DNA from: Perna viridis
Lineage: Eukaryota
Direction of reading: 5' to 3'
Length of the DNA stretch: 64,000 bases
NCBI GenBank assembly: GCA_037379345.1
Contig: CM074516.1
Span: forward strand, 26,784,001-26,848,000
The translations under genes and the position numbers were made by a program. The notes beneath the pieces were generated by a model, which saw nothing but the letters and a program-made list of their open reading frames with translations, made no database searches and had not been told where the DNA came from. The stretch's first letter is position 1, and every line of letters begins with the position of its first letter. This document shows positions 29,801 to 64,000 of the stretch, in pieces.

Positions 29801-30567
29801 CATATAATTGTTTCTCCAGTGGTCTCATGACACAAATCTTTGACTTACTTTCAATGCTTAATGATTCTGATTTTGCAGAAACTACCACATTTTTACTGCT
29901 CTGAACTTTCGATGAATCAACTGTTTTTTTAAATGCATCAACTTTTGTTTTTAAAACAGTCTTGGAGTCTCCCTCATTAACAGTTTCTTGGTCTCCCTTT
30001 AAAAGTTTTATATCCTGTTTCTTTTCTGCAGCATTTTCCCTCACAACCATCAAATTTGGATTGGTCTCTAATCTAACATCTGAATATTTCATTCTAGATG
30101 ACCTTGACTGACCTTGATTATCATTTTGTTTTGACTGTTGAATATGACCTTCAATTTCATTTTTAACTTTGGCCTTTTCAGATGCATTTTCTGTAACAAT
30201 GTTCATATTTGGGTTTGTCTGTAATCTTACATTGATGTATTTCATTCTTGATGATCTCCCTTGGATTCCAGTGTAATCCGTTAGTTTAGACGGACCAGTG
30301 GACTCTATAGCCTCCTTTTGGTTATTTTCTGTAATTCCTGTCAAAGTTGGATTAGTTACATCAGCACTCTTTATTTTGGGTTGCTTTGAATTCTCTTCAC
30401 TGTCTTCCTTTTCAATTTTTTCAGTTTCTTCCATAGGTTTCTCAAGATTATCTTTGTATCCAAAGTTTTCTCTCACAACTTGTAAGTTTGGGTTAGTTTC
30501 TAATCTCACATCTCTACACATTCCATCTTCTGATCTATTTGAGTATTCTGAATAGCCTGCCTGACGT
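26847..30567 (-). CDS. 3.7-kb terminal coding exon of the uncharacterised minus-strand gene
   Basis: Acceptor ttttttcag|ACGT at 30567. The frame stays open to TAG at 26847. Confidence 0.9.
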
Positions 30568-33500: not shown

Positions 33501-36500
33501 ACTTTGATTGCCAACCATACTTCAGAAATGGAATATTTACTAACCTTTAACATGGTTAAGGTTACACTTGCAAAGTGAGAAACCATTTTTTTACCCAACT
33601 TGCCATTCTGGCTAGTGGAATATTGATCTTGCTAGCCAAATACAAATTCAACTAGCCACATTTTTTGGGGTTTTTTTTTCTGTACTATCATCTGTTTTCT
33701 CTTGGATTTAACTATCTTCTGCCTTTCTTTTTCATTTGTTTTTAAATTTATCAAAAACTTTTCCATTTTTCGAATATTCTCTCCCATTTAAGTTGTTCAT
33801 GTACTTTACAGTAACAAAATAAGTACTCCATTTTTGAACTCATATTTTAAGAGTAAAATTACATTTCACCAGATTATGAAACAAGAAAAATACCGGAAAT
33901 TAAAATGGCAGATCATAAACAATGCTTTACTGCGAGTCAATAAAATCGTGCACATTATGCCAAAATTCACTTGACATATTCAAGCTTAACTTCTTAAAAT
34001 GTAGAAAACATATTTTCAATGTATGATGTGAAGGGATGTTTTACTAAATAATCTGTTGGCTGGTTAACTTTCCTTGGAACTTGCCAATGAAATGACTATT
34101 GAACTATTGAAGTTTATGATTGGTAAAAGAAAATACCTGTGGTCAATCACAACAATTGTAACATGTAGTTATTGGGAAGAAGCGGAAGTTACACATAGTG
34201 TGATTCTTTTCAAATCTGTTGTACTGAATATGTAATTTCTGACTCGAAAAAACATAAAACCATGAAACTAAATTTATATGTATCATTATGGAACAGAATT
34301 AAAGAGTATATTGTTGGACCTTACAAATAAATAATTTCCCGACATTTAGTTCAACAAGATGTCTGTAGAACATGTACTGAGCTGATTTATTCTAATTTTA
34401 GTGAATGTAAATTTTGAAAGAAGACTCAGACTTGTCATTATATTTTCCATACCTTTTTCCTTGTAGCAATTTTATATTGTTCAACCACAGCAGCTTCAAT
34501 ATCCTTTTGAGGAACATCCTTCAAGTAACCCAACTCAAAGATCAACTTCTTGGCATTGACAATATGCCCAAGTGCATTCTTCCTCTGAACAAATTCAAGA
34601 AAGTTTTCAGGTTCAGCCTCCACCTCTTGACATTTTGACACTTCACTTGTCTTGGGTTTTGATTCCATTTCCTTACTTCTTTCGATAGTTGAATCACAAG
34701 TGTTGTCCTTCTTGCCACTACCATTTTTCTGCTGAGACTTATCCTCCATACTTTCATTTTTCTTAACTGTTTCATCCTGACTTTCTTCAGACTGATTTTG
34801 AGACCTCCTGCTTGGGATAATGTATTTTTGTATTGGCTTTTGATGGCATGGCCCAGTAGAACTTGTTTGAAGAGCTTTTCCATTACTTCTATCGACTGAT
34901 GATGGTTTTACTTCAATTGAATTTTTCTCATTTTCCTTTATGTTCTTTTTACCCACATGTTTGTCCTTTTCTGTCTCTGATATAGCTGCTGTTTGTGACT
35001 TGACCTCATCAAATACAGTTTTCTTAGAACTAGTGGCTATATTTTCCTTTACCCGTTGTTTATCTGGTGTTTTACTTTTTCTCTTTTCCCTTTGCTTATC
35101 TTTTCTTTTTGAGTGTTCATTTTTTCCACTCAGTTTACTCATACAAACTGGGATCTTTGGTACCACATACTGAGCATCCTGCCCGCCATTAAAATGTTGG
35201 TCCCCTGTATCTTTTACAGACCCATCTCTACTTTTGACATCAGTGTGGTTATCTCCCTTTAAATCCGACGGTACTTGCACAACTTCAAAACTTAGAAGTT
35301 TCTGATTTTCTGAGTTTTCGTTTACTTTCATTTTAGGTATAGAAAGTTCTTTTTTCTCAGGAACAGTTTCTAGCGGATCAACATTTTTATCTACACCATT
35401 ACTTCCTTCATTTAACATATCAATATCAATATGGAGGAAACTTGAAGTCAGTCTTCTATTGTCATTGGAAGGTAAATCAATGTCCAGAAAACTATTTGAA
35501 AAATCAGTATTAAAATTGTCATTTTTATCATCATGGTTTGAACCAAACTCCTCAGTTGCTGTATCTACTTTGATGAAACTTTCTTCAGACAGAGATTTGG
35601 CTTCAGTACATTCTGCATGATCAACTTCATTCAACATTCTTGTCTTGTGTTCTTCTGTTGTTTCTATGACAACACAGTCTTTGTAGACATGCTCTGAAAC
35701 AAAAACTATGATAATTTAATGCAAACACAAAGAAAAACCAATAAACATTAAAAAGAAACAAGCAACTTGTAGCCATATGTCCCAAGCTGCCACAAAAAAA
35801 AAGTTTGAAGTGCAAAACATACCATTACTCTTGAAAATATGTCAAATCAAAAAGGCAACACAATATGATCAACCAAATACCTACAAATATCTAACAAAAT
35901 CTGTAAAGTGGCATCTGAGATGTGTCCACTAAGTGTTCCTATAGTGTAGCATGTACAAGTTCTACAAAGTCCAATAACTCCTGTATAATTGACAGCACAA
36001 TATCATTAACATTACGGTAAAAATATAGGTCATTTAAAACAGGTGGTGTAAATGTACAGATTAATCTTTTATAGAATACACTACATTGGGATATTTTTTT
36101 CCCAACCTTTTACAGTTGAATTGCCTATTTTTATCAATTGTCTTTACTTAACAATTGATTCATAACAATTTACAACTAGTCAAAATAGATATTTTTAAAT
36201 ATAGGAAATAAATTATGTTTCAAATAAGAAATACGAAAACTTGGTTCTAATGAAGACCAGTATAATATTTCGATATCCATAAGCATTTCTGTTTACTCTG
36301 CCTTTGAAATTCCCAATAGTGTATGAAGTCCTTTGTATCAATAACTGTAGCAACATTAGGAAGCATCAAGCTCTTATTTGACACATCATAATTTTCAATA
36401 TCTGTTCTACTACATCAGTTTAAAATAACTGTAAATATCAAAATAATAATTTCAGCATATACAAATGAAAATTGAGGGAATCATCATGGAATTAATACAC

Positions 36501-41844: not shown

Positions 41845-43608
41845 ATGAGTATGAGCTCTACAATTTTTGAAATCTTATTTACAACCTATAATGGTGATTT
41901 TTCTGGATTTGAACCTGAGGAAAATGAATGTTTTCTGAAAAGTTGTGACTTATATGAAATTGATAATTGTCTTGATAGAACACTTTCTGTTGTTATAAAA
42001 TTCAACAATCAGAAAATATACAATGAGTTTGAAAAAGTTATTTATAAAAACTATGATAGAAACCTCTTTGAAGAAAAATACAGGAATGGTCAAGTGTTAC
42101 AGTCCTTATTTCATGATTTGAAAGTTGTACATGTATTTACATTGTATGAGTCAACTGGATCATTACATGTACAAGGAAAGGGTTGTGAAAAATGGTTCAA
42201 AGAGATGTTTTCTGTTTTTGGAAACTTACTTCACAATCAAATGAAATATTCCAAAAGTGAGGAAATTGAATCAATGGATAGGACTGATAACATATTATTG
42301 AAATCAGTGGAGGAGTTTAACCTATCAGAAACTGTGATTGATAACAAATTAATATATTTCCATGATGATTCTGAAACTGAGGTAAAATTATTAAATGTGC
42401 AGAATTCTGATACATGCCCTCAGCAAGAAGTTCAGAATTTTATTATGACTTCAACACCAATTTCTACAATGAGAAACAACAATTCTGATGGACATTGTAA
42501 CAAAGCCTTGAAAGCCTTGGAGGAAGAAGTAAGTGACTTAAAAGAGTTAGTGAAATCTCTATTAGCTTTATGTAACAAGCAAGAGCACCCTCCTCAGTTA
42601 ACAGTAAGCTCATCCACACAAACTAAAAATGATATCAAGAAAAAATCTGGAAACTCCTCCACACACACACACAAACAGGGAGTGATGAGAAGCAAAAATC
42701 CAACATAAGCAGACATACTTCAATGGAAATAACAAAAAGATCAATTGGAACACAAATCTATAAACTAAATGAGGTTAATAAAATGCGAAGTTGTTCAGTT
42801 CAAACTGACTCAACTCCAGTAGCTGTAGGTCAGTGTATAGATGATAAAGAAACTATCCTTCAAAACACTCCCAAATGGAAACAGGAGTCCGTCCAAATAA
42901 TGGCCCGATCAAACAGAATTTTTTTCAGCACTGAACAAAATGAAAAAGAAATGCTTCATGATCTTAAGAAAGCTGAAACACTGATTATTGGAAGCTCCAT
43001 GCTAAAGGATATAAATCCATCAGGATTATGGGACACAGACATTAGTACTAACAGGGGCCAACATCAGTAAGCTCATAAAAACTGTACAGGAGAAGGATAT
43101 GTCATCTTATAAATTTATTATAATTCATATTGGAGGAAATGACTTAAAAAGAGGAGAAAGTTATTCGACAATAAGAGACAACTATGTAAGTTTACTGCAG
43201 TTATTAAGGGCTGTATGTAGACCAGACTGTGTTTTAATGATATCAAGCATTACTCCAAGAAAAAAGATTAATGTTGACCCTTTGAATCAAATGTTATGGG
43301 AGATGTGTAGTGACCTGAACATACAATTCTTTGACCATTATGATTACATTCATGACAAAAATGGTAGAGTTTTGCATTATCTGTTCCAAGATGGGTTACA
43401 CTTTTCTAGAAAGGGAACATCTGTTTTCCTACAATCGGTAAACAATTATGTCAATATCCTAGGTTATGATATGAAGAATGGGATTTTTTGTACTGAATGT
43501 GGGGAACCAAACCATAATAGTAGATCTTGCAAGCACAGTCACAAAGTTGTCTGTTATTCCTGTAATTATTATGGCCACAAAGAGAAATTTTGTAATTTTT
43601 ACAGCTAA
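41845..43608 (+). pseudogene. LINE ORF1: coiled coil, SGNH/GDSL esterase and two CCHC zinc knuckles (frameshifted)
   Basis: Split over three ORFs. Motifs are LKALEEEVSDLKELVKSLL, IIGSSML, HIGGND, DGLH, CTECGEPNHNSRSC and CYSCNYYGHKEKFC. Confidence 0.85.
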
Positions 43609-43678
43609 GAATATGGCAAAGAAGAAATAGCCATAGAAAATTTGACAAAAAAACAATAACTATTTTACATTATTCTCA

Positions 43679-46600
43679 TTGTGTCAAGATTTTAACAATA
43701 CTACTTGCACATGTCCTAAATTATTATATGGTTTTCTGCAAAGGAGTGTTAAATATTTTAATGATGATAAAAGTAAGGATAAAGCTATAAATCAGTTATG
43801 TTCGTCATCCACTACAGGAAGGAATTTGTCTGCATGTCAAGATTCTGTAGACACTAATAGAATGAAGGACATGTTAATCACAGATCAGATTAAGTTTAAT
43901 AGTGTAAATGAATTGCCTGTAACTAATTGTACCATAACACCTCCTGAGGTCCTTCCATCATTTGATATAATGTTGCATGTATGTATTATGTTTACTTTAT
44001 CTATGATATCTTGTTTCTATTATCTGAATGTACAGGAAGTTATGACAACTGATCTATATAAGATGTATAATGAAAGTCCATATGGTTTTGGAAAAACAAA
44101 AGGATTGAAAATTTCTTCACATAATGTTAATAGACTGGAAAACAAGTTTGATGAAATTAAGAACACTTTATTATTTCAGAAGAATCAGCCAGATATGATT
44201 GGGTTTTGTGAAACTTTTCTAAATCCAAATACTCTAGATAGAGAACTAATTATTCCTGGTTTGAATCTTGAGAGAAAAGATAGGATGAAACTACATGATG
44301 GTGGTGGTATTTTAATCTTCATGATAATTTGAAATTTTCTAGAAGACCTGATTTAGAAATAGGTGGCATTGAGACTTTGTGGTTAGAGATCAAACCATTC
44401 TGTAAAAGATCCTTTTTCTTGTGTTATGTGTACTTTTGATAATTTGATAATTTTGAAAAAGAAATGAGTATAGCTATGAATATAAATTCTGATGTTATTA
44501 TTATGGGTGATTTTAGCATGAACTTTTTACATCCGTCTAAACCTACACCAAAATTGTTAGATTTCATTAATATGTTTCATCTTCACCAATTGATAACTGA
44601 GCCAACCAGAGTAACAGAAAATACAAAAACTTTAATTGATCATATTTATGTAAGCAATCTAAACATGGTCCTAGATTCTTTTGTTTGCAATTCTGCTATC
44701 AGTGATCATTACCTGGTGAGTTTAGTTAGAAAAGAAAAAGGACATGAATTAAAAAAGACCCATTCAACTATTACATACAGAAATTTTAAGTTTTTTCTTT
44801 CAGATATGATGAATACACCTTTTTACCTTATTGAGCAAGAAAGTGATCCTTCTGTGTGCCTCGATTAATTTTATGGTATGTTAAATTCTGTTCTAAATAA
44901 ACATGCCCCAATTGTAACAAGGAGAGTTGAAAGGATTGGTATAATGATGAAATTTTAAATGCAAGAAACCAAAGGGACAAATTCAAGTCTCTTGGTATGT
45001 GGTCAGAATATAGATTTTGGCGAAATAAAACAACGCTTCTGATAAATAGTGCAAAACAAAATTACTATGTAAATCTTGTAAAGGATAGTAAAGACTCCAG
45101 AAACTTATGGAAGTGCATTCATAGTTTAAATCCTAAAGTCAAATCTCCACCAAAGGAACTGAAACTTGAAAGTGGGGAAAAAGTAGTAGACAAAGAGCAA
45201 GTACCCAATGTTTTCAATGATTACTTCACATCTTGTATTGAGAATTTAAGAAACCAGATAATTGTGCCAAACTATGATTTTCATAAACTACATAAATATG
45301 TTAAGGAAAAGATTAGAAACTATGTTCATAAACAGTTTATGATACCTCCAGTAAAATGTAGTGAAATTTATGAAGCACTATTAAAGTTAGATACAACTAA
45401 GTCATCTGGATATGATAATATTGGGCCTAAGGTGCTGCAATTAACGTCTCATATTATTGCACCAAGTTTTACTTATATATATAATCGTATGATTGATTCA
45501 GGCATATTTCCACATTCACTAAAGATTGCAAACGTAACTCCTGTTTATAAGAGTGGTCAGAAAGATTTAGTATCAAATTACAGACCTATTTCAATACTTC
45601 CTTCATTGTCAAAAATAATTGAACGACATATATCTAATCACTTTTATGAATATTTATCTCAATGGGAATTTTTACATCCAGCTCAGTCTGGATTTAGACC
45701 TAAACACTCCTGCCAAACTGCTCTTGTGAATATTGTGGATAAATGGCTATGTAAGATGAATGATGGAAACATAAATCTGGCTATATTTGTAGACTTTAAA
45801 AAGGCTTTTGATGTTGTTGATCATGATATACTTTGTAAAAAACTAATGATCTATGGTGTAAATGACAGTACTGTGCAATTCTTTAAGTCCTACTTAAAGG
45901 ATAGAAAGCAGCAAGTAAATATTTTAAACACTTTCTCATAAAAAAAAACATATTAGCTTTGGCGTTCCTCAGGGTTCCATACTTGGACCACTTTTATTTG
46001 TTATATTTATTAATGATCTTCCTCTTGACATGCATAATACAAATGTTGATATGTATGCTGATGATACAACCATACACAAATCTTTGAAAAATATTAATTT
46101 ATTACAACAGGATATGCAAGATGATCTAAGAAAAGTTGAAAACTGGTGTAGAAATAACTGTATGTTTATCAATCCTAATAAAACTAAGTATATGATTATT
46201 GGAGCAAGACAAAAACTGTCAAATGTTGATATACCCTCCTTAATAGTTAATGATAAAGCTTTAAAATTTTCATCATGTGAAAAACTACTCGGTGTAAAAA
46301 TTGATGATACTCTAAGCTGGAAATGTCATGTTGATCATATATGCTCTAATATTTCATCAAGATTGTATCTCCTAGCAAAGATTAAGAAATATCTGAACAT
46401 TGAAACGAGAAAAACTTTCTATAATGGGTACATTCTTCCACTTATTGACTACTGTTTTATTGTATGGAGTGGCTGTGGCTCTGAAGGATTAGACAAAATT
46501 CTTAAACTCCAAAAACAGGCTGTCCGCCTCATTTTAGATGCTGAACCCTTTCTTCCATCAGAACCCTTGTTCAAAAAATTAGGAATCATGAAAGTAGAAA

Positions 46601-46890
46601 CAAGGATAAAATATCACAAATACCTATAAATCTATAAATCTCTCCATGGGGAAACACCAAGCTACATATCAGAAAAGTTTAACTATGTTTCAAGAAACAA
46701 ACCTCATTCACTAAGAAATGCTGAACAAGAAAATTTGATAATCCCAAACATTAAAACTGAACTTTTCAGACATTCATTCATACATTCTGGGTCTGTCTTG
46801 TGGAATAAGTTACCCATACATTTATGTAATCAAGCCACTGGCAACTCATTCAAAATCAATCTAAAGAAGTACCTTAACACTTTTGAATAG
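43679..46890 (+). pseudogene. LINE ORF2: AP-endonuclease and reverse transcriptase (disrupted)
   Basis: APE motifs: ISSHNVNRL, GFCETFL, IIMGDF, IDHIYVS, SDH. RT motifs: [57 protein letters not shown]. There are several frameshifts and stops (for example TAA at 46627). Confidence 0.93.
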
Positions 46891-50870: not shown

Positions 50871-51228
50871 CCACGTCATCTAAATATATTCAAATGTTGT
50901 ACTTGAAATGACATTTTCACCTTTACCTACTTCAACAAGTGCTTATAAAAATATCATTAATCGTGCATATTTCCCGCCATTTCATCAGCGTTAGTTGTAT
51001 GTTTGAAAAAAAATCATGAGCAGAGTTACTTACCTTCTCTATTTTCGGTTTCACTTTAAAACCTTTAAGTAAGTTGCATATATTATATGATATAAAATTC
51101 CGAATTAGCTATTAAATGGTAACTATATGTACCTTTTTTCCGTTTCATTAACCTTTAACGATGCACATGTATTCCAGTACACATTTAAAAATCCTATGAA
51201 AACTTTCAAAAGTACATCACACGTCATC
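50871..51228 (+). promoter_or_regulatory. Candidate PARP-gene promoter/first exon: TATA box, ISRE/IRF-E, two CRE/UPRE-like sites
   Basis: TATAAAAA at 50944-51, TTTCCCGC at 50970-77, TTTTCGGTTTCACTTT at 51042-57, donor AA|gtaagt at 51068/69, and CACGTCATC at 50872 and 51220. The next exon's acceptor is at 51652. Confidence 0.5.
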
Positions 51229-51732: not shown

Positions 51733-54700
51733 ATGATGCCAGGTCAACCAAAATCCTCAAGAGGTCCTACTACATCGAAAAGTGCAAGTCATGGCTGTTC
51801 CAAGGGTCAAAGACTCGGGAATCCACAAGGACCAAAAAGTGCTAACAAACAAGGACAAAAGAGTGGAAACCAAAGCTCAAAAAATAAAAGTCAAGGGAAT
51901 CCACATGTTGCAAAAAGTGGCCAAAGACAAAATCAAAAAATAAGTGAGAAAGGCCCTCAGCCAGCAGGCCAAAATAGGCCAAGAACAGAAAGCCAGCAAC
52001 AACATCAGAGGCAGAAATTTAGAAACCAGAATGTACAAAATAGGTTGAACCTCGGAGATCAGTCTAAGCCAAAACAAGCCAGTGGAGGCCATCAACAACA
52101 ACAAAAGCCAAATTGTGGAAGCCAGTTTCAACAACAAAGACCTTATGATTGTCACCATCATCAAGAACAGAAGCCAAACTGTGGAAATCAATATCAGCTA
52201 CAAAGATCTAATAGTGGAAACCAGCATCTACAACAGAGACCAAATAGTGGGAACCAGCATCTGCATCAGAAGTCAAATGGTGGAAACCAGTATCAACAAA
52301 ATAGATTGAACCCAGGAAACCAGAATCAACAACAAAGACCAAATATTGGCAACCAGCATCAGCAAAAAAGGCCAGATAATGGAAACCAATGTCAACAACA
52401 GCAACCTCATGGTAGCAACCAGCATCGACAGCAGAGAATTAATTGTGCTAATCAGCATCAACAACAGAGACCTAATAGTGGAAACCAGTATCAACAACAG
52501 GGACCCAATAGTGGAAACCAGTATCAACAACAGGGACCCAATGATGGTAAAAAGCACCAAAAAGAGACACCCAGTGGTGGTAACCAATATCAACAACGAA
52601 GACCCAATGGTGGTAACCAGCATCAACAGCAGAGACCCAATAGTGGTAACCAGCATCAACATCAGAGACCCAATGGTGGTAACCAGCATCAACATAAGAG
52701 ACCCAGTTGTGGTAACCAGCATCAACAACAGAGACCCAATAGTGGTAACCAGCATCAACAGCAGAGACCCAATAGTGGTAACCAGCATCAACATCAGAGA
52801 CCCAATGGAGGTAACCAGCATCAACAACAGAGACCCAATAGTGGTAACCAGCATCAACATAAGAGACCCAGTGGTGGTAACCAGCATCAACATCAGAAAC
52901 CCAATGGTGGTAACCAGCATCAACAACAGAGATCCGATTCTGTACATCAAAAACAAAGAAGAAATCATTTGGTATGATATACATGTCTAGAATAGAATTT
53001 CTCTTGTATGAATGGTGTGCAAAACTTTTTTACAGAATTGTGCTTTTAGTGGAAGTTTTTGTAAGAATCAGGTAAAATGAGAAAAATCAGAAACATGCTT
53101 GTCAAAAACCCACCAATCTGACATTATAGTTCACTCAATGATGCTTTCTCTATTTTGAAAGACTATTATTTGATCACTGGATTTGCTCAGATATTTTTCA
53201 ACTGAAAAATTAGATTTTTGTCTGAGTTATCTGCCCTTGAAATGTTCCTTTTCAGTGCATTTCATTGAAGTTACTATTCAATTTACAAAATGATATGGAA
53301 AATCTTGTCTTTTTCCTTGATTCTGATGGTGCAACTAGTCAAATTAAACTTTCAAAATGGTGTTTTTTTCATAATATGTTTCACCAATATATGATTTCCC
53401 TCAAGTATTCAATTTTTCAGCTACCTTATCAGCCATAATTTCAGTTGGGGAAGGATTTACGGAAAACCTCAATTTTTTTTCATGAAACCAGCAGGCCCTG
53501 TTTCTTGACAGTCAAATACTGCTTTAATAGACATTAATAACTTTGTGGCTTAAGATTTGTCATTGTGAATCCTTTTTTTCTGCACTTTTGGTTATGGAAT
53601 TTACATTGAAATTGGGGGGTGGGGGGCTTAATTTGTGTTTTAGTGCATCTTTGTGTTAAATGGATATTCCATCGCTACTCTATAGATATTTTCTTTATGT
53701 GTTTTTTTAGCGATTTAACAGACCTGTTAGATGTATTTCTACAATCCAATCTTCTTTACCAGAAAATAGATTAACAAAGGCACTGCTAGAAGGTATGTGG
53801 TGAGATATTTTACATTCATAAATGACAGTAGTCAGTAGGTGTTGGGTACTGTAGAAATAATTTAATTAATTCATGGATTCCAATTTTTGTGGACAAGGAA
53901 GGAAACATTCTTGGATTCTTGAATTTTTGGTTTTTAAGTTTTCAGTATACACATCAACAGGAATCTACTATTTGTTGGGAACATAATTTTGTGGTTTGAC
54001 CTAACCACGAAAATTGGTGCCCCACGAACGATAGTATTTTCACAGTAATTCTTCTATGTTTACCATGAGATTTTGATGTTTGTAAAATATTTCTAGAATT
54101 ATAGACACATACATATGTATTTGGACTTTGCTTTAAATTTTTCATAGGTGTACATGGCTTGTCCTGCTCTCTTGTACTACAGTATTTTACACTCCGTTTT
54201 TTAATCATGATGAATCTTCTCCTCTGAAGTTACATGTATGCAGATTAACTCTGACCAACTTTAACCATTATGCATTTGTTTTTAAATACCATGAGTATAC
54301 CAGTTGGGAAACAAAAATGGCATGTCTATTTATAAAACCCAAGGAAAAACCACTTTTTTAAAGCCATATCTTAAAAACTTCAGAGATATAGAAAAATAAA
54401 GGTCAGCTTTTTGTTGTTGGGGGCATAAAGAACTCTACAAAGCTCTACAATTTGGTTGACGTTACAAGGTGCAATTCAGTATGAGTTGTTATCCTTGAAA
54501 GGTGAAAATTTATGGGTTTTTTTTTGTTTTTTTTTTTGTAGTTTTTAGCAATTTTTAGCATCAGAGCCGATAAAAAAATCTTTTTTAAGTATTGATATCA
54601 TCCATATGATAAGGCCTACAAAAATCTTCTTGTTTCAAGCTATAGGACAACTCCATATTGCCCTAAAAAGGCAAAAAAGTGACTTGCTAATATCTTGAAA

Positions 54701-57700
54701 CCATGACAACTAGGAAAAAAACTTTCAGTTGATGAAATAATCCTATGATAAGGCCTTCAAAAAGTTTACAATTAGTTATTGTTGGGTATTTGTAAATAAA
54801 AAAATAATTCATTTATTGCTTTTCTTGATTAAATATTATGACCACAAGATGCTATTTTTTGTTTTTTTATATGGTATTTAGGTTCCATGCTTTTATTATT
54901 ATTTTCAGAAACATGATTTTTTAAATGAAATTTGGTAGGGAGGTGAGAAGAGGGTTATGTAAAGCAACTTTAATTGTTAAAACTGTATTCTATTTACAGA
55001 TGAGAGAGGCTTTAACCAACCAGAAAACCAGAAATTGAACCAATTGAGGACATTTGTTACTAATCAGAATGATAAAACAAGAAATCAACTATATACTTCT
55101 GGATACAACCAGTCTAGTCAATTGCAAGGATACAGACAATTTGGTACACCTTTTGATAACAGAAGGTTTGGTCTACCTTCTGATAAAAGGCAAATCAGTC
55201 CACCTTTTAACAGCAGACAATTTGGTCAACCTCCTTATAACCAGTATGTTTGTCCACCACCTTCTGAGAAGCAATTTGGTCCACTCCCTGATAATAGGCA
55301 ATTTGTTCAGCCACCTGATAACAGGCAATTAAGTACACGTTCTGAAAACAAGCAACTTAGTGCTCCACCTGATAGGAGGATATTCCATCCACAACGGTTG
55401 GGACAAAATATCCCAACAAAGTTAAGAGGACAAATTGGCTCTTCCGATCCATTTGACAACAAACAGTTTTGTCAAACTAAGGAACAAAAGGAATTTTATT
55501 TGTCACTTGAAAATGAATCATTCTATCCACCTGGAAAAGAACAAGTCAAACCTCATTTTCACCAAAGCAGGACAAGTCAGCCTGTGAGTGGATTTATTGA
55601 TCACCATAAAGGTAAATTAAGAAATGGCTAATGAATGTGGGCTCTATATGCTGATATATAGATCTAGATTAGAACTATATATTAGGTTTATGTTTTATCT
55701 CAGCAATAGCAAGATATTAAATATGTATTTCTTAAAAAAAAAGAAAAACATAATAGCCAAGCATTTAGGAACTTTTTACATTCAAGTACTCATGAAAAAT
55801 TGTAGCATATATGGACATATAACTTAAAATCATATGGAAAAATATATTCAGAATTTGTATAGAAGTGAGGAGATTTTTTTTTGCGTGTGCTGTTAAATCA
55901 TATTTTGCTGTTTGAAAAAAAACACACCTAAAATAGATGTGAACCGCTTGCTTGCCTCCACTTCAAATTTGGCATATAAAGTTATCCCTGATATGTTTGC
56001 TCTAAAATTTATGTCCCTTTTATCAAACAGACAACAAACATGTCTGTTATTGTAGAATGTATCATTAAACTCAACTTTTAGATAGCTTAAAGAACTTTTT
56101 TGCTACTTTCCAGGTTCATCTTTCAATAATAATGCAGGAAATGGTGAACAATTTGTTAACCAGCAAACATTTGGATATGGCCACAATGAAGAGGAGATGG
56201 AATTTGAAGAAGTTTGTGAAAAAGACCAGGAGGATTTGGAAGAGGAGTTTGATGAAAGTCATGTATTTTTTGAAAAACGCCATGATGAAGAAGAGGTGTA
56301 CTTTGAGCATGAAGATCAGGAGGGATTTGAAGAGGAATACATAGAAAATTTACAGGAAACTGAAGAGGAATACCCAGAAAATTTGCAGGAATTTGAAGAG
56401 AAATACACAGAAAATTTGCAGGAATTTGAAGAAGTTTATGATGAAGATCAAGAGGAAATAAAAGAAGACTATGAAGGAAATCAGGAAGAATTTGAAGAAA
56501 GCCATGATGAAAATCAAGAGGTATTAGAAGAAGGTTGTGATGAAAACCAGGAGGAATTTGAGGAAAGCAATGGTGAAAACCAGGAGGAATTGGAGGAAAG
56601 CTATGGTGAAAACCAGGAGGAATTAGAAGAAAGCTATGGTGAAAATCAGGAGGAATTTGAAGGAGGTTATGATGAAGATCAAGAGGAAATAAAAGAAGAC
56701 TATGAAGGAAATCAGGAAGAATTTGAAGAAAGCCATGATGAAAATCAAGAGGTATTAGAAGAAGGTTATGATGAAAACCAGGAGGAATTTGAGGAAAGCA
56801 ATGGTGAAAACCAGGAGGAATTAGAGGAAAGCTATGGTGAAAACCAGGAGGAATTAGAAGAAAGCTATGGTGAAAATCAGGAGGAATTTGAAGGAGGTTA
56901 TGATGAAGATCAAGAGGAAATAAAAGAAGACTATGAAGGAAATCAGGAAGAATTTGAAGAAAGCCATGATGAAAATCAAGAGGTATTAGAAGAAGGTTAT
57001 GATGAAAACCAGGAGGAATTTGAGGAAAGCAATGGTGAAAACCAGGAGGAATTAGAAGAAAGCTATGGTGAAAATCAGGAGGAATTTGAAGGAGGTTATG
57101 ATGAAAACCAGGAGGAATTTGAGGAAAGCAATGGTGAAAACCAGGAGGAATTAGAGGAAAGCTATGGTGAAAATCAGGAGGAATTTGAAGGAGGGTATGC
57201 TGAAAACCTAGAGGATATTGTGGAAAGGTATGATGAAGATAGGGAGGACTTAGAAGATTGGCATAAAGAAATTCAGGAGGAATTGATGGCAGGTCATGCA
57301 GTCCGGGAAGTATTTGAGGATACCTATGATGTAAATGAGGAGGAAGTTGAAGAAGGGTATGATGAAAATGGTGAGGACTTTGGTTGTGGTGAAATTCAGG
57401 ATAATTATTTTTCAGAAGTTGAAATGGAAGATCGTACTGAATTTGTTGAGGATTATGGTTATAGCAATGATGGAAATGAACATAAAAGTCATGATACTAT
57501 CGAAAAGGATACCAAGATTATAGAAAAAGGTCCTGGTGTCAAGGACCATAATGAAACCATTGAAGACACTGACCAAGATCACAACATTTTTGATGATGGT
57601 GAAGGTCATGGTTGTCAAGAAAATGAACTTGGTTTAAAACAGTCTGAAGAAAGCAAAATACACAAAATATCAGAATCTAAAACCAAGCAGGAAAAAGATG

Positions 57701-60700
57701 AAAAATCTGACTTGTCGTGCGACACTACATCTTTAAGTCAGTTAAGTGTATCAGGCCAATATTTCAGAAATGAAGTTCAATTGACAAAACAAATGAAAAT
57801 CTTTGATGAGGGAAAGAAGTCATTTGTTGGTAACAGAACAAATAGATTTATACCTGGTGATAATGTGACTTGTGGAATAGTTGGTAAAGATGATGCAATG
57901 ACATATGATGTCAAGTCAGATAGTCAAGATGAAAATATCAAGGAAAGAGAAAGGCAGATGATGTTAGATTATCAAGAGGATGAAAATTTAAAAGAGAGAG
58001 AAAGAATAATGATAAAGGAACTGGTTCAAGGTGAAAAGATGTCAAGATCATCTACAAAACATACAGAAGACCAAGAAGATGAAAACATAAAGGAAATTGA
58101 GAGGAAAATGATGGAAGCATGGATTCAAGAACAACACAAATCTGAAATTTCCATTGACAAAACTTCACCAAGAAGCAATTTAGATCCTCTTCATCTTGAC
58201 TATCAAGAGCATGATCCTGAACTACTTCAAGACATTTCAATAAATACCTATATCTGTGCTGAACTCACCAAAGAAAGATGCAAAAATGACAATTGTAATA
58301 ATCATCACATATCTAGCTGTATTCCGTACCTTTGGCAGGTAAAAATGTTTGACAGATGGATACCATTTACAACTGGGGAGAATGAAGTTGTTGAGAAAGC
58401 CTTCTGTAACCTTCAGGATAGTGTAGAAAATCAGGTAATTAAAGCAATTATATAAACAGGAACATTTTCATGACAGTTTTGGTTTTGTTATTTTTGTGTA
58501 AGAAACTGCAACACAAAAATAAAATATTGCAGATATTAAATGTCTAAGAATTGTGACTGTCTGTTTGAAATAAAATCTTCAATTAAGAAAAATTAATTTT
58601 CTTTATAGAAGATTTCATTTCAAACAAACATCACAAAAATTCTAAGACTATAATACATGTAAAAATGGATTGAATATAGAAAAACCACAAAATTACCAGT
58701 TTACAGACATTAAAAGTTGATTATTTTTCAGTTTCTGACATATTTTGGGTATCAAGGTCAACTTGCTTATTTCTTTTAAATCAAAAGAATTTGTGTTTTG
58801 ACTTTTAATGACTATCTGTAATGTAAAAATAGCAAAAGCTTGAATATGTATACAAATGCTATATTTACAGTACTTTCGTTTTTAGGTTTCACATGGTCAT
58901 CATGTGACACGATAATCAATTTACATTTAGTTTCTATTCTATACTTTCTTTTCATTATATAGCTAATTTTGCAACTAAAAGATGTAGAGTCACTGAACTG
59001 ACCCACCCTTGTCCCTCTCTTATTTGATGGATCAATGATCAAGTACCAACTGATCACTATAAATTGATGGCTAATTACCGATTTGACCACACTTTTGTTA
59101 TGATAAATTACAGATGATCAATTCATGTAAATTTCAGAATTTTCTTTGAAATTCACTCAATGCAAAGCTATTTCAAATATAGTTAAAATTTACTTAAATT
59201 CATTTGAAAAATGGAAGTGACGACCTGTCAATTAAACTGATCAATTGATTACTGATCGCTGTGATAGTTTCACCAATAGGTTAATGTACTGTAATTTTGT
59301 ATTGGTTTTAAGTATATTGGCTCTCTATATTTTATACACATCTTATCTCTGGGGATTGTACATTTAGGTCTTTTTTAAGTCTTATATAATTGTAGGCTTC
59401 GTCTATGTAGGATGGATCTATTTGTTCTAAAATAACATCTGATTTTGTCAATAATGCAGTGAATGCACTGCTATGTTGTTACATCTCAGATGTCTCGACC
59501 AAGGGGTTAAAAGTTCAAACAATCACTTCCTAATTGCATACATCATTTTCCATTTACACAACTTCCGACAGTACCATTTAAGGAGGTAGACTTAGGGTAA
59601 ATGGACACAACTCTTACAAATCATTGGAATGTTTGTATTCAGCATTTTACATCAATCTTATGTAAGCATCTAATTAACTTGGATTCATTTTATTCTGCTT
59701 CAAGTAAAAGCTTAAGAGGCTTTTGTGAAATTGAACATAATACAAACATATCACTGATTTCATGAGTTATGCCACTTTTCCTAGGTCTACCTCCTTAAGC
59801 CATTCATGTTTCAGAGCATGTACATTTAAAGGATGTCACTAATGCTCCGTCCCTACAGACTGAAAATTGTTGAAGTTTTTTTTGTTATTAGTAATGTACT
59901 TATGAATTTCCTATTTCTAAAACAACTGAAAAGAGAGTGTTTGTTTTGAAAAGTTCAATTTGTTATATTTTTAAGTTTTTTCTGTGTTTCCATGATCTGA
60001 AATACATAAATTGAAATACTGGTGTTCGGTAAATAGTATGTACTTTTTGATATATCAGAGATAGGGATTTGGTTGGCAATATACCTGTAGCAGCATCTGC
60101 ATGTATGTACTAAAACTTTCTTGGAATAATTCCAGATGTTGTACCATGGTGAAAGGTACAGCTACCAGGTTACCTTTGGCAAGATGGAGGTTTCCATTAA
60201 AAGTTCTGAAGGACATTCAGCTCTTGGTGATGGCCAACAGTTTAACATACGTCGACTCACAACACCTTCATTTGCTGACAGGAGAACTTCTAACCATTGT
60301 TACTCAACTCAATGGAGATGGTATTGGAGAAATGATATCCAGAAGTGGGAGATTTATGACAGGGTGTGTATGTCTCACAAAATGAATATATTCCAGAGGT
60401 ATTTTGACCTTATATATGTATGGTCCAGACTTTATGTATGATATTTTTTCCAAAATTCCTGTGTGTCCAACTACCAGTATACACATATTGTGAAAATCAG
60501 TCAATTTGATTATTATTTCCTTCAAGTGTTACAAAATGCAACTTCATTTTTTTCTTGATGTGCCATCATTTCAAACAAAATAATCATTGTAAACAATTTT
60601 TTTAATTATTTTACAAATTTTGACAGAATATGATTTGATATATGGTTGACCCTGAAAACAGGGGGTAGAAATGAAAAAAAAAATGCCCAACTGGTCAAGT

Positions 60701-63700
60701 GGACAAGTTTTTCTGAAACTGAACTGGCCAAGAATGAAATTTAATTGCCTTAAGATATGTTTAAGGGATCATACATCCCAAATGAGTTGGCCTAGCCATA
60801 AGCTCTGTTTGAATATAACTTGCCCATCATGAAATTTGCTTGCTGCAGCACAGTGGGAAAAAATTGCAGAACATTTTTGCTAAGTTTAAATACATCATAG
60901 GTATGAACATATATAAAAGCGATGATAATTTTGTAACATTTTCCTCAAATCCATCCTCAACTCAATTTTTTACCAATCAAATCCCTTGAAATTAAGGATT
61001 TAATGAAAATCTCAATTTGATATTTATGAATTCCAGGCATGATGCCTTACTTTTATAGTGGCTCTCTACATATTTTAAACATCTTGTCTTTTGGGATTGT
61101 ACATTTAGTTTTATTTAAATTTATTCAATAAAAATTGCTGAAGTTTTATTTTTGTTTTTTTGGGTTTTTTTTGTCAAATATATATGAATCTATTTTCTGC
61201 TCACTGAGTTGTTGGTAGATATCCGAGAACTTACATATACCATCTCAGAATTATTTAAATTTGAGCAGTTAATTGCTGGATCATGCATTAAAAATAAGAG
61301 CAATGAAAATACTGATTGATGAAAACACACTTTTTCTTTGATATGAGGAGAGTCTGACCTGTAAGAGGAGGAAGTTGAATATGTACAGTGTATTAATATT
61401 TTTAAAAATAATAATGTCTTTGACAGTTTTAGTAAACAAGGATTTATTTCCTTCATAATTAACAAAACTTTAAGACACAAGCTAAAAACATTTTTACAAA
61501 ATTAAAAAAAAATATCCTCGCTTTGTATTACCCTTGGTATTACAAGTTAACTTCCTGTCAGTGTGAATTAAGGCTCTCAATGCTTCTAAAGTCAAAGGTT
61601 AAATTTTGGATTCACTACCATTATGAGGACTTCATCCTCTATTATACCTCTTAATTCTAGTAACTGTCTTATCTACATTGTAGGATATATTTCAGTTCAC
61701 ATTAGAAAAGAAGTACCTATCAAAGCAGAAAAGTTATCTGTTTTATAAAGATACTTATGTCCATATCATGTATAAGATAGACTTTAAGAACTTTACTCAA
61801 ACCAATATGGAGACTGGTGAAGTCAGTCAAGTTATCAGACGACCTTACTTTGTGTCAAGAGAAGATGTGACAGAGCTAAAATTGTAAGGTTTAAGCTAGA
61901 CATTCTTACTTTGATATCCTTTTATGAGATATATGCTCATTGTAAATCTAGCTACTTAGCTTCTTTTAAGCATAAATATCCTTTTTTAAGTATTCTTGCC
62001 TGAAAACTGACTAAATGAGCACTAGTAAATGGAGAGAATTTCTAAAGAGTGGAGTTTTCCTTAGCAAGAAATTGTCTTCAACCACTCATGTAACCAATAT
62101 AAAACTTCTTAACTTCCTATTTTAGAAATGTGACATTTACATGCCCTCTCTGTGAAATTTAACTTTCCAATGTTTGTTATTTCAAGTTAACAATCTTATT
62201 CTAGCCCAGAAACAGTATCATTTCCTGTAGCCATGACAACACCCAAGCCAAACCATTTCAACACCTGGGATTGTGCGCATGATTTTGAACTGATCGACCT
62301 TGATCTATGTGGAAGAGAATACCAAGATGTCTTATGGACTTTTCAAGAAACAATGGCATTAAGACGGTTTCAAATAAAAAATGTTTTTCGAATACAAAAC
62401 AGGAAGTTGTGGAGCGAGTATGATATGTGAGTGATGAAATACTCTCTCCTATTTGCTTGGGACATGATAACCACTCCTGCAACAGGAAATATCTCACCCT
62501 ACCTCTGTTCCTTTGAGGTTCTGGGATATTTTACATTTTATTGCTGGCAGACACATATGTCCTATTAATTTTTGTCAGCAAAGTAATCCTAAGTGTGTAG
62601 CTTATTGAGGTAAAAGGGACAGTTTGGTGAATATTTTCATTAACAAAATCCACTTTTTTTATTCATAAATAAACATGGCTACCATTAGTAAAAATGGATA
62701 GTAGTGGTCAAACAACAGATTTTTTGTAATTTTGTTCAAAAACCATTTGATTCAGACATATGCTTACTTGGGTTTTAGTATTCAACATAAAATAATGTAA
62801 TCATGAAGACATTTTCGTGAAAATCTGTCAACCCTTTTCATAATTATTAACCTTTATATTGTTCCCTTTTGCTTTTATGATGTTTTCATATCTAAAGATC
62901 AACTCCTCTGAAACTTCAAGTACCAATATTTTGAAACTACAGGAATTTTAACCTAAATTCTCTTTACAAATGGTCCAATTTTTGTGTTGCTCAGCAGGTA
63001 GCAGAAATAATAGAAGTATAGGGGATTCCCTAATTGATAAACTTTTTGTTCAAAATTTTTTCACTCCTCCAGGTGAGCGATTCAGGTTCTTTAGACTCTC
63101 TAGTTTATCAACTACTGAATCTATCCTTGTAATCATCTTTTTGTATAGGTATATTTGTTTCATTCTTTATGGAATCTTACTTGGTTTTAAGTGTTACCCC
63201 AAAAATGATTAATATGTTTTTATTTTTATAATGTAGGAAACGGAAGCACATGCTTGCAGATGCAGAACAGGATGTAATGGACCATGAATTTAACGAACTA
63301 GATTTGTTCCATGGCACTGACTCCTTGAACACATGTAGAGGAATTTGCGTCAACAATTTTGATTTTCGTATTAGTGGTCGTAATGCCACACTTTATGGAC
63401 AAGGATCTTATTTTGCAACAAGAGCTAAATTAAGCCACAGCTATACTAAAACTGACTCTCAAAAAGATGTCAGGTTTATGTTCCGGGCCAAAGTTCTAGT
63501 TGGCCAATACACTAAAGGTAATCCATCTTTAACAAGGCCACCAAACATTCCAGGAAAGATTCACAAGTTGTTTGATTCTTGTGTAGACAAAGAAGACGAC
63601 CCTTCCATATTTGTGGTCTTTGACAGGAGCCAATGTTACCCTGAATACTTGATTATGTACACAGACAATGAGGTCAGTTCTGTCAATCCAAGATTAATGG

Positions 63701-64000
63701 AGACACAAGGAATTAAAACTACAAATAATGCTACCATGCTGCCAGACAATGGGTGTTCTATGAACAAAACTAATGAAATAGTTTATCCTGAGACTGTTAT
63801 CCACCAGTCTGGCCCTTTAGTTTACCCTGAGTCTGTTACCCACAAGCCTGGCCAAATAATTAATCAACAACAGACAAATATGCAACCATCAGGTCCAGAA
63901 GTTGCAACTAATATGCATAAGCCTTTGGTTTATCCACAGCAAACAGGCATAAAGGAGCAGCATTCAAGTACCATTACAGAAACTCTGAAGCCTCTACAAT
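51733..64000 (+). CDS. PARP7/PARP12/ZAP-family mono-ADP-ribosyltransferase (CCCH-WWE-WWE-PARP) with a long repetitive N-terminus; 3' end beyond the window
   Basis: Phase-consistent exons: 51733-52971, 53711-53792, 55000-55611, 56114-58434, 60136-60363, 61684-61883, 62205-62426, 63237->64000 (>1889 aa). CCCH finger CAELTKERCKNDNCNNHH. WWE1 PYLWQV..RWIPF..VEKAF..IRRLTT. WWE2 WRWYWRND..WEIY..LEKKY..YKIDF..QTN..TG..VIRRP. PARP motifs RIQNRKLW, LFHGT, FDFRISG, YGQGSYFA, SHSY, MFRAKVLVG, FDSCVD, PSIFVVF, YPEYLIMY. Confidence 0.92.
52100..52935 (+). repeat. Coding 33-bp tandem repeat (RPNSGNQHQQQ, about 25 units)
   Basis: Unit agacccaatagtggtaaccagcatcaacaacag, with the 3' copies nearly identical. 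Confidence 0.95.
53046..53386. mobile_element. Second, 3'-truncated copy of the 11395-11789 MITE-like element
   Basis: Colinear similarity, for example tttgtaagaatcagg.aaaatg.gaaaaatcagaaacat and ttccttgattctgatggtgcaa. Confidence 0.75.
53847..54047. mobile_element. Short TA-flanked MITE (tactgt...acagta)
   Basis: Terminal TACTGTAGAAATA / TATTTTCACAGTA with internal ccacgaa motifs. Confidence 0.55.
54190..54770 (-). mobile_element. Degenerate inverted HINE-family fragment
   Basis: Reverse-complement similarity to 25910-26160 (for example aactttcagttgatgaaataatcctatgataaggcc). Confidence 0.5.
55128..55397 (+). repeat. Coding 27-bp degenerate repeat (DNRQFGxPP, about 10 units)
   Basis: GYRQFGTPF DNRRFGLPS DKRQISPPF NSRQFGQPP YNQYVCPPP SEKQFGPLP DNRQFVQPP DNRQLSTRS ENKQLSAPP DRRIFHPQR. 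Confidence 0.85.
56200..57380 (+). repeat. Coding acidic 33-bp repeat (ENQEEFEESYG) with a 231-bp higher-order unit
   Basis: tatgatgaagatcaagagg occurs at 56437, 56668 and 56899, a period of 231 = 7x33. Confidence 0.95.
59582..59794. mobile_element. 213-bp palindromic MITE with a TTAA duplication (Kolobok-like GG...CC ends)
   Basis: TTAA|GGAGGTAGACTTAGG...CCTAGGTCTACCTCC|TTAA. Same family as 12384-12595, in inverted orientation. Confidence 0.8.
63237..63660 (+). CDS. PARP catalytic core (H-Y-I triad)
   Basis: Manual translation (not in the ORF track because there is no stop in the window): ...LDLFHGTDSLNTCRGICVNNFDFRISGRNATLYGQGSYFATRAKLSHSYT...DPSIFVVFDRSQCYPEYLIMY. Confidence 0.95.

Follow-up and report, generated by a model that had tools for sequence, protein, structure and literature searches.

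An expressed Perna viridis gene joining a PARP12-type cassette to long tandem-repeat arrays, with loss of the RNA-binding zinc-finger module

Introduction

In vertebrates, CCCH-WWE PARPs (PARP7, PARP12 and ZAP) play a central part in antiviral and stress signalling, and RNA-binding fingers are usually credited with their targeting. A locus at the end of a 64-kb stretch of Perna viridis DNA (the whole stretch analysed here, hereafter the window) raises the question of what remains of such an enzyme without these fingers. Its initial annotation described a ZAP/PARP12-type ADP-ribosyltransferase in which the fingers were replaced by about 1350 residues of charge-segregated tandem repeats. Do repeats and PARP domain belong to one gene, was the RNA-binding module lost, and what could the repeats do instead? 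Exons were analysed singly in sequence searches and structure prediction.

Gene structure and expression

The gene occupies the plus strand and is composed of eight GT-AG exons encoding 1892 codons, from 51733 to a stop codon at 64009-64011, 11 nt beyond the end of the window. Splice phases were consistent at all boundaries and no stop interrupted the 1892 codons; open frames in this region extended over 51733-52977, 54981-55631 and 56086-58455. Exon 1 (51733-52971) contains 413 codons from the ATG and ends on a phase 0 donor (TTG/gtatga), RNA contigs leaving it at 52970/1 and resuming in exon 2. The latter is a mini-exon of 82 nt (53711-53792; 27 codons plus 1 nt, no stop), bounded by tttag/CGA and AAG/gtatgt, which fixes the phase in which the F/P exon is read after the Q/N exon; its 81-82 nt were present in RNA contigs between 52970 and 54998. 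The exon coordinates proposed initially were right, yet this small exon had been overlooked, as had the position of the stop codon outside the window. Exon 3 (55000-55611, 612 nt) was spanned by RNA contigs over 54998-55609 and joined to 56112. Exon 4 (56114-58434) forms a single open frame of 2321 nt or 773 codons, and three RNA runs gave coverage in every bin.

In three independent RNA-like studies, spliced contigs followed the path 52970/53710-53790/54998-55609/56112-56465 in frame. The main doubt, whether the arrays formed a separate gene, is answered by these contigs, since they join exons 1 to 4 in frame; a two-gene or mis-joined model was ruled out on the same ground, and the assignment of the Q/N, F/P and acidic exons to one gene was upheld. 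Further downstream, RNA contigs covering 57165-58434 ran on 430-1546 nt past the donor at 58434, and the longest of these extensions (1461-1546 nt) fit the 1425 nt of predicted exons 5 to 8. Introns had no coverage in the RNA runs, against a depth of about 100x for the DNA control. The joins between exons 1 and 4 were seen in contigs, while those linking exons 4-5-6-7-8 were deduced from homology together with splice signals and the lengths of contigs. Logan contigs encoding P0163 and P0003 were also considered as splice evidence and were discarded, being colinear with genomic DNA. One expressed gene carries both the arrays and the PARP cassette.

A gene-model artefact would place the Q/N and F/P exons in another gene upstream, or make them non-coding, with the PARP gene beginning inside exon 4. 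It could draw on the breaking of contigs in repeats, none spanning the whole gene, and on the possibility of an internal promoter. Yet the absence of a full-length contig follows from the assemblers, which break contigs inside repeats: the breaks fell at identical repeat positions in the RNA runs and in the DNA control. Exons 1, 2, 3 and 4 are moreover linked in all three studies, and the acidic array shares one exon and one open frame with the CCCH finger and WWE1. We give the artefact next to no chance.

The strict ISRE consensus GAAANNGAAAST had no match within the 64-kb window. A site at 51042-51057 displayed the GAAANNGAAA core only, not the full ISRE consensus.

The zinc finger, WWE and PARP cassette

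The C-terminal part was annotated as a CCCH-WWE-WWE-PARP cassette, and profile matches (PF00644, PF02825) together with ZAP and PARP12 structures agreed with this. It is preceded by a paralog-homologous linker (57808-58250) bearing GIVGKDD and three DENIKERERxMM motifs, and opens in exon 4 with a single CCCH finger (ZnF5, about 58252-58320) followed in the same exon by the start of WWE1. Linker and finger aligned to Mytilus proteins and to a chromosome-12 paralog. Exon 5 (60136-60363; acceptor cag/ATG and donor AGG/gtgtgt, both phase 0) completes WWE1 and opens WWE2, with RRLTTPSF and WRWYW; it aligned to Mytilus protein P0002 and matched the ZAP ZnF5-WWE1-WWE2 structures 7sz2 and 7kzh (1e-07). 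The third Trp of WRWYW aligned with mouse ZAP W585 and human ZAP W611, a residue that stacks on adenine (PMC9720839). The rest of WWE2 is found in exon 6 (61684-61883, splice sites present), which displayed a PF02825 WWE match (3e-05), ZAP and PARP11 WWE matches, and 55% identity to P0002. A weak PF23466 match was also recorded in the cassette region.

Exon 7 (62205-62426, splice sites present) carries the first part of the PARP catalytic domain, with 51% identity to P0002, 71% DNA identity to the chromosome-12 paralog and a weak PF00644 match at the start of the profile. The catalytic core and tail are encoded by exon 8 (63237-64000, continuing to the stop at 64009-64011), where PF00644 scored 4.5e-18 and the best solved-structure match was the PARP12 catalytic domain (3e-35; 8xpx, 6v3w, 2pqf), with LFHGT, GSYFA and PSIFVVF aligned. 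These motifs hold the positions that we take to be the H-Y-I triad (His 63310-63312, Tyr 63409-63411, Ile 63607-63609). The tail, about 110 residues, displays repeated (L/I)VYP motifs, and TRF detected a 39-nt repeat at 63779-63853. By alignment, the triad and the ADP-ribose-stacking Trp of WWE2 are intact, and WWE2 looks competent for ADP-ribose binding.

Loss of the RNA-binding module and origin of the gene

A tblastn search of the 64-kb window with three ZnF modules (P0005, P0006, chromosome-12 paralog) found no four-CCCH module, and exons 1 to 4 contained no CCCH cluster upstream of ZnF5. Nor was a ZnF exon found hidden in introns or in upstream sequence, the tblastn search having covered the full window. 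Two paralogs of the same genome (chromosomes 12 and 3) kept the module in the homologous large exon, and Mytilus relatives kept it as well. The absence of an N-terminal four-CCCH domain, as first annotated, thus stands on the search of the 64 kb and on its retention in these relatives, and the gene has lost a winged-helix plus four-CCCH RNA-binding module.

Membership of the ZAP/PARP12 type was confirmed by the PARP12 structure match and by a tree of exon 8. In this tree, built on a short alignment of 146 columns, the gene was sister to the ZnF-bearing chromosome-12 paralog (support 93/93), within a 96/95 clade also containing Mytilus PARP12-like proteins. Synonymous sites were saturated (pS 0.84), and pN was 0.14-0.15 for the PARP exons (linker, 0.33); given this conservation of the PARP exons beside saturated synonymous change, we consider the gene an old, maintained duplicate. 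As judged from these comparisons, it belongs to the PARP12/ZAP-type CCCH-WWE PARPs and arose, within the mytilid bivalves, from a PARP12-like gene that carried the fingers.

Tandem arrays of the N-terminus

Upstream of the cassette lie 1357 residues. The initial figure of about 1350 residues holds for this N-terminus, but only about 780 of them form tandem arrays, the remainder being non-repetitive low-complexity sequence and linker. Three arrays were found, from N to C a basic Q/N/H/R 11-mer, a degenerate [RK]QFGxPPDN 9-mer and an acidic 11-mer with a 77-residue unit. Their positions and charge segregation, as first described, were confirmed by TRF, by the open frames and by net charges of +46, +10 and -214 for exons 1, 3 and 4, respectively. 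The predicted N-terminal part is a block polyampholyte, with roughly +59 across the first 645 residues and -214 across the next 770.

In exon 1, a basic G/Q/K-rich head is followed by 26 units of 11 residues (NQHQQQRPNGG; array about 52087-52944), detected by TRF as a 33-nt period in 25.6 copies (52089-52932). This array had been called prion-like. Its Q+N content (up to 44 per 80 residues) agrees with a criterion of at least 30 per 80; the same criterion also asks for few charged residues and few prolines, and the label is doubtful, since one Pro and one Arg/Lys occur in each 11 residues almost throughout (Pro 7.7%, Arg+Lys 10.5%). The 9-residue array of exon 3 (55132-55330; TRF period 27 nt) lies in Q/P/F/R-rich surroundings. 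The acidic EESYGENQEEF/L array of exon 4 (56309-57369), upstream of an acidic non-repeat stretch, comprises about 400 residues with 39% Glu and hardly any Lys or Arg. TRF reported a 33-nt period in 28.9 copies (56420-57369) and a higher-order unit of 231 nt (77 residues) in 3.5 copies with 92% matches. An aromatic/Leu stripe follows the i, i+4, i+11 spacing of an 11/3 helix, and AF2 without alignment predicted long helices, a prediction that counts as weak since mean pLDDT was 59.

Both large arrays were unique in the 723-Mb genome, with just weak low-complexity matches elsewhere. In a set of 5.8 billion proteins, searched among proteins 0.55-1.75 times the query length, exons 1 and 3 had no relatives except one same-species fragment matching exon 3. 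No ortholog of equal architecture was found in other species. Homology of exons 1-3 to Mytilus or Mya N-termini was also considered and abandoned, the likeness being compositional, with nothing left after composition correction. Descent of the Q-rich and the E-rich 33-nt unit from a common ancestor was not supported either, since their best-rotation identity (16/33) was equalled or beaten by 16% of shuffles. The arrays appear private to this gene and to have arisen in place, within what is a predicted protein. Variability between units peaked at third codon positions, and among ten polymorphisms seen in transcripts for exons 1 and 4, nine were non-synonymous. Since these polymorphisms are mostly non-synonymous and the 231-nt units are 92% alike, the arrays could be young, weakly constrained expansions with no specific role.

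Comparison with known CCCH-WWE PARPs

Human PARP12 and bivalve PARP12-like proteins (Mytilus edulis 'PARP7S' models of the CAG2244514 type) display the same ZnF5-WWE1-WWE2-PARP order as the gene described here. PARP12 provides the closest solved structure of the catalytic domain, and the gene nests among bivalve PARP12-like genes; unlike PARP12, it lacks the winged-helix/four-CCCH module and displays 1357 low-complexity residues there instead. The central ZnF5-WWE1-WWE2 of ZAP (PARP13) also aligned, including the adenine-stacking Trp of WWE2. Yet ZAP has the CpG-RNA-binding ZnF1-4 that this gene lacks, and the PARP domain of ZAP is catalytically inactive, its canonical triad being lost, whereas H-Y-I is intact here. 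PARP7 (TIPARP) and PARP11 offer an analogous layout (one CCCH or none, WWE, H-Y-I PARP, no RNA-binding array), and the N-terminus of PARP7 is disordered as well, although the present one consists of tandem arrays and is longer by a factor of about six. The gene is not orthologous to either, and it kept two WWE domains against the single one of PARP7. PARP7 was not seen among the solved-structure matches, where its structures may be few.

The uncharacterised LOC127720278 of Mytilus californianus (XP_052082745, 1777 aa) likewise carries an N-terminal Q/N/P/G-rich tandem array and an acidic array in the linker. It also has GIVGKDD, DDNIKEKER and the ZnF5-WWE-WWE-PARP order, its C-terminal tail contains repeats as well as VYP motifs, and its PARP core is 73% identical. 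It differs by keeping the winged-helix and four-CCCH module and by its acidic array, which is Asp-rich and placed after GIVGKDD instead of before; its arrays could not be aligned to the present ones after composition correction. The Mya arenaria 'PAR12-like protein' WAR14556 (872 aa, unverified gene model) also lacks ZnF1-4, its N-terminus being P/Q-rich, RG-rich and then acidic, straight into CCCH-WWE-PARP. This N-terminus has only about 350 residues without long tandem arrays, and the protein falls on a different tree branch.

Judging from these sequences, repeat arrays recur across the bivalve PARP12-like family. The literature found on PARP12 in bivalves or molluscs held no description of a ZnF-less repeat-array architecture. 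The initial claim of an undescribed system was overstated, since relatives carry Q/N and acidic arrays and WAR14556 lacks the fingers too. The word 'replaced' likewise simplifies matters: the arrays sit where the paralogs have their ZnF module, but no homology indicated direct substitution.

Possible roles of the arrays

Taken together, the results probably describe an expressed, old, lineage-specific PARP12/ZAP duplicate in which the cassette was kept, the ZnF module lost and targeting taken over by the arrays. Its conserved motifs suggest an active mono-ADP-ribosylating enzyme whose WWE2 would still let it dock on ADP-ribose or poly(ADP-ribose). Direct RNA reading would no longer be done by this enzyme; targeting and local concentration might instead be achieved by multivalent, charge-driven contacts of the disordered N-terminus, presumably in stress or innate immunity, as in the remaining family.

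Other readings assign the arrays less, or more. They may be neutral minisatellite expansions in a relaxed duplicate, the product being a minimal CCCH-WWE-PARP enzyme like PARP7/PARP11 whose N-terminus is tolerated ballast, variable between individuals. The predominance of non-synonymous polymorphisms, the youth of the higher-order repeat and the confinement of the arrays to this locus agree with it, and so does the presence of different arrays at different positions in other family members (GQPSTGHL in the chromosome-3 paralog, the D-rich array after GIVGKDD in M. californianus), from which array gain appears frequent. We consider this rather unlikely: the frame is open over 1357 codons, about 580 of them non-repeat, splice phases were kept over three introns, and within-array variability is highest at third codon positions. 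Furthermore, relatives too carry a Q/N-rich block at the N-terminus as well as an acidic one, which suggests that composition is selected.

Somewhat less likely is a condensate-forming antiviral or stress-granule enzyme, its Q/N block driving assembly and its Glu array acting as a PAR/RNA mimic or as an acceptor of auto-MARylation. H-Y-I type PARP enzymes automodify, partly on acidic residues, and the type of the enzyme, the extreme charge segregation, the high Q+N content and a WWE2 that looks fit for ADP-ribose binding all point that way. The literature connects ZAP and PARP12 with stress granules and with PAR (PMC5656619, PMC11731017), which also favours this possibility. Yet amyloid-type prion behaviour is disfavoured by the Pro and Arg/Lys of nearly every Q/N unit, simple self-coacervation would be unbalanced since the overall net charge is strongly negative, and the usual route of the family into RNA granules is gone without the RNA-binding module. 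Two further proposals are improbable, to a similar degree. In one, the Glu array would functionally substitute for the RNA-binding fingers as a nucleic-acid/PAR mimic, capturing basic nucleic-acid-binding proteins (e.g. viral capsid proteins or nucleoproteins) and presenting them to the attached mono-ADP-ribosyltransferase, with the basic Q/N block as an intramolecular counter-ion switch. In the other, the protein would regulate its ZnF-bearing paralogs or serve as their decoy, sharing their WWE-PARP surfaces and ADP-ribose docking without RNA binding, and competing with or modifying canonical enzyme complexes; its sister relationship to a ZnF-bearing paralog of the same genome and the retention of the ZnF5-WWE-PARP cassette under purifying selection would suit such a role.

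Conclusion

The gene is a real, uncharacterised variant of the known PARP12-type mono-ADP-ribosyltransferase family: a natural, expressed and long-maintained member from which the fingers were removed and to which a large block polyampholyte was added. Mytilid PARP12-like genes gain tandem coding arrays repeatedly, a pattern without description in the literature searched. If the polyanion-mimic proposal were true, this would be an antiviral PARP aimed at proteins instead of RNA. The occurrence of a ZnF-less gene and its ZnF-bearing sister in one genome offers a comparison pair for the respective contributions of zinc fingers and disordered regions, which bears on localisation, substrate choice and auto-modification.

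Gene structure and transcription

Three long open frames of the forward strand (51733-52977, 54981-55631 and 56086-58455) are followed, on their 3' side, by shorter forward-strand frames displaying WWE and PARP motifs. The stretch was contained in sequencing runs from nine studies, and splicing was examined by placing the contigs of three RNA-like runs (from different studies) and one DNA-like run on positions 52500-58499. Depth in the introns was zero in all three RNA-like runs (e.g. 53500-53699, 54100-54499 and 55900-56099) vs about 100x in the DNA run, and RNA-like contigs spliced 52764-52970 to 81-82 nt at 53710-53790, then to 54998-55609 and 56112-56465. Zero intron depth and joining contigs therefore revealed a small additional exon, missed by the initial annotation. 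With GT-AG boundaries supported by RNA contigs, exons 1 to 4 (+ strand) occupy 51733-52971, 53711-53792 (the small exon), 55000-55611 and 56114-58434; their phases are consistent (0, 1, 1, 0) and they are free of stop codons. Exon 4 displayed depth in every bin of the three RNA runs, and more RNA-like contigs spanned 57165-58434, extending 430-1546 nt past it. Contig breaks within the 231-nt repeats of this exon reflect an assembler limit and not a transcription gap, since they occurred in the DNA run too.

Exons 5 to 8 (60136-60363, 61684-61883, 62205-62426 and 63237-64011, + strand) were located via alignment to Mytilus proteins and splice signals. The stop codon (64009-64011), read from genomic stretch L021, lies 11 nt beyond the window end, and the complete predicted coding sequence comprises 5676 nt, i.e. 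1892 codons, with ZnF5 starting at about residue 1358. Exons 5 to 8 total 1425 nt, in agreement with two RNA contigs that continue for 1461-1546 nt past 58434. The window gene is a single spliced, transcribed gene. Of the joining of Q-rich and acidic exons to PARP exons, as put forward in the initial annotation, the part linking exons 1 to 4 was borne out by RNA contigs; the four downstream junctions are predicted from alignment and splice signals.

A very high-copy repeat lies in intron 1 (53045-53400), where contig depths add up to about 146,000 for the DNA run and to thousands for the RNA runs. It is probably a fragment of a transposon, SINE-like or other, and copies are also present at the chromosome-12 paralog locus.

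Catalytic cassette

Domain and structure searches were run exon by exon. Exon 8 matched Pfam PARP (4.5e-18), its best solved-structure matches being PARP12 catalytic domains (3e-35). Its LFHGT, GSYFA and PSIFVVF segments align to PARP12 motifs, at positions that we take to be the H-Y-I triad, the pattern of mono-ADP-ribosyltransferases. A Pfam WWE match was found in exon 6, and exons 5 and 6 matched crystal structures of ZAP ZnF5-WWE1-WWE2. The CCCH immediately 5' of WWE1 corresponds in alignments to ZnF5 of the paralog and of Mytilus proteins. In WRWYW, the third Trp falls at the position of mouse ZAP W585 / human ZAP W611, a residue whose mutation abolishes ADP-ribose and PAR binding (PMC9720839).

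The tail downstream of the PARP domain (63680-64000), where Tandem Repeats Finder reported a 39-nt repeat (63779-63853), displays repeated (P)(L/I)VYP motifs. These were also observed in the chromosome-12 paralog (L017 1330-2046, - strand) and at the C-terminus of a Mytilus californianus relative (P0005), and may represent a conserved short linear motif.

Repeat arrays

Tandem Repeats Finder detected a 33-nt array of 25.6 copies (52089-52932), two degenerate 27-nt arrays (55132-55330) and a second 33-nt array of 28.9 copies (56420-57369), the latter also described as 231 nt x 3.5 copies with 92% matches. At the protein level, these correspond to 26 units NQHQQQRPNGG (30% Q, 15% N, 9% H, 10.5% R+K and 8% P), about 10 units [RK]QFGxPPDN, and about 37 units EESYGENQEEF/L in 77-residue higher-order units. 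Net charges are +46, +10 and -214 for exons 1, 3 and 4, respectively. Given the 11-residue period, Tyr and Phe/Leu lie on one face of the acidic array, which AF2 without alignment folded into long helices at low confidence (mean pLDDT 59).

Both large arrays were unique in their own genome (723 Mb searched); no relatives were found in protein sets, nor any alignment to Mytilus N-termini once composition was corrected. A common origin of the Q-rich and E-rich arrays is unsupported despite their common 33-nt period, since, even when optimally rotated, the consensus units agreed at only 16 of 33 positions, a value matched or exceeded by 16% of shuffles.

Own-genome paralogs and loss of the RNA-binding module

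Exon 8 and the exon-4 tail, used as queries against the same genome (723 Mb in 46 contigs), gave at least 26 PARP-like matches and two close paralogs, on chromosomes 12 and 3. The homologous large exon of both encodes RG-rich sequence, a winged-helix-like FKF(M/L)IK segment and four CCCH fingers ahead of the linker and ZnF5-WWE1 that the window gene also has. The chromosome-12 paralog has an additional upstream open frame of GNQGYGGP repeats. The chromosome-3 one carries a coding array of the 8-residue unit GQPSTGHL (L023 ~2300-2850, i.e. C3:702300-702850 of genome G000) between the four-CCCH module and ZnF5, which shows that array gain in this gene family was repeated and independent. As initially annotated, the window gene has no four-CCCH RNA-binding domain: tblastn with the modules of the paralogs and Mytilus gave no match in the 64 kb, and homology begins no earlier than 57808, with the RF...GIVGKDD motif. 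Absence of the module is a derived state.

The paralogs lie in small clusters (C12:17699756-17714009 and C3:663724-715516; L002-L006, L014-L016). On chromosome 12, two partial PARP-exon copies 7 kb apart scored identically in the search (E 7.3e-39, 73% identity to query) and each contain a single in-frame TGA; on chromosome 3, another CCCH/WWE and PARP copy, interrupted by in-frame stops, lies ~40-50 kb upstream. These copies look like local duplications with decay.

Relatives and age of the gene

An exhaustive exon-8 search retained 128 representatives (E <= 1e-30). The full protein is absent from the searched library, since only a fragment of 253 residues, from the same species, matched at 100%. 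Among full-length proteins, the nearest are Mytilus models, uncharacterised and 1316-1817 residues long; the closest named proteins, with 69-73% identity in the PARP core, are also from Mytilus, therefore pointing to a mytilid-like bivalve as the source. Most instructive is M. californianus LOC127720278, where a Q/N/P/G-rich N-terminal array, the winged-helix and four-CCCH module and a D-rich array after GIVGKDD are accompanied C-terminally by DDNIKEKER motifs, the cassette and a tail containing repeats and VYP motifs. The module occurred in 41 of 56 scanned relatives (>700 residues); a few displayed the cassette without it, including Mya arenaria WAR14556, whose N-terminus runs from P/Q-rich through RG-rich to acidic.

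Maximum-likelihood analysis of the exon-8 core placed the chromosome-12 paralog as sister to the window gene (93/93), both grouping with P0005 with weak support within a 96/95 clade. Between the two paralogs, pS was 0.84 (saturated) and pN was 0.33 for the linker and 0.14-0.15 for PARP exons; at the DNA level their loci resemble each other only in exons 7 and 8 and in common transposon fragments. The window gene is an old duplicate subject to purifying selection rather than a recent pseudogene.

Other features of the window

Two long minus-strand open frames of 1224 (26847-30521) and 399 residues (34438-35637), both S/K/E/N-rich, apparently disordered and devoid of Pfam matches, might both be exons of a single uncharacterised gene; the former opens with three copies of an RSSRMKYxDVRLETNPNxxVVRENA-like motif. 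Upstream of the PARP gene, a series of broken forward-strand frames matching GDSL esterase and reverse transcriptase (41845-46629) is a decayed non-LTR retroelement. An ISRE-like site (51042-51057) reads GAAACCGAAAA on the minus strand, with the core GAAANNGAAA only; the stricter pattern GAAANNGAAAST gave no match in the window vs 0.83 expected by chance.

Possible role

The literature search retrieved no description of a PARP12 architecture combining repeat arrays with loss of the fingers, nor of bivalve PARP12-like repeat arrays; array-bearing relatives and models lacking the module are already in databases, unremarked. According to one evolutionary study covering molluscs (PMC8102003), a single ZAP/PARP12-related gene is typical of invertebrate genomes, whereas several were found here.

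The two large arrays expanded recently, as their internal identity is high; within-unit variability was highest at third codon positions, and nine of ten transcript polymorphisms were non-synonymous, with none nonsense. The condensate and polyanion-mimic ideas of the initial annotation are possible, hypothetical roles for the N-terminus, with neutral expansion of the arrays as a serious rival explanation. The gene is expressed, has an intact mono-ADP-ribosyltransferase cassette and a conserved ADP-ribose pocket residue, lacks RNA-binding fingers, and bears a low-complexity, strongly charge-segregated N-terminus. The predicted enzyme would ADP-ribosylate itself and partners, and would be recruited not via RNA but through WWE2 binding of ADP-ribose or PAR, together with multivalent electrostatic contacts of its N-terminus.
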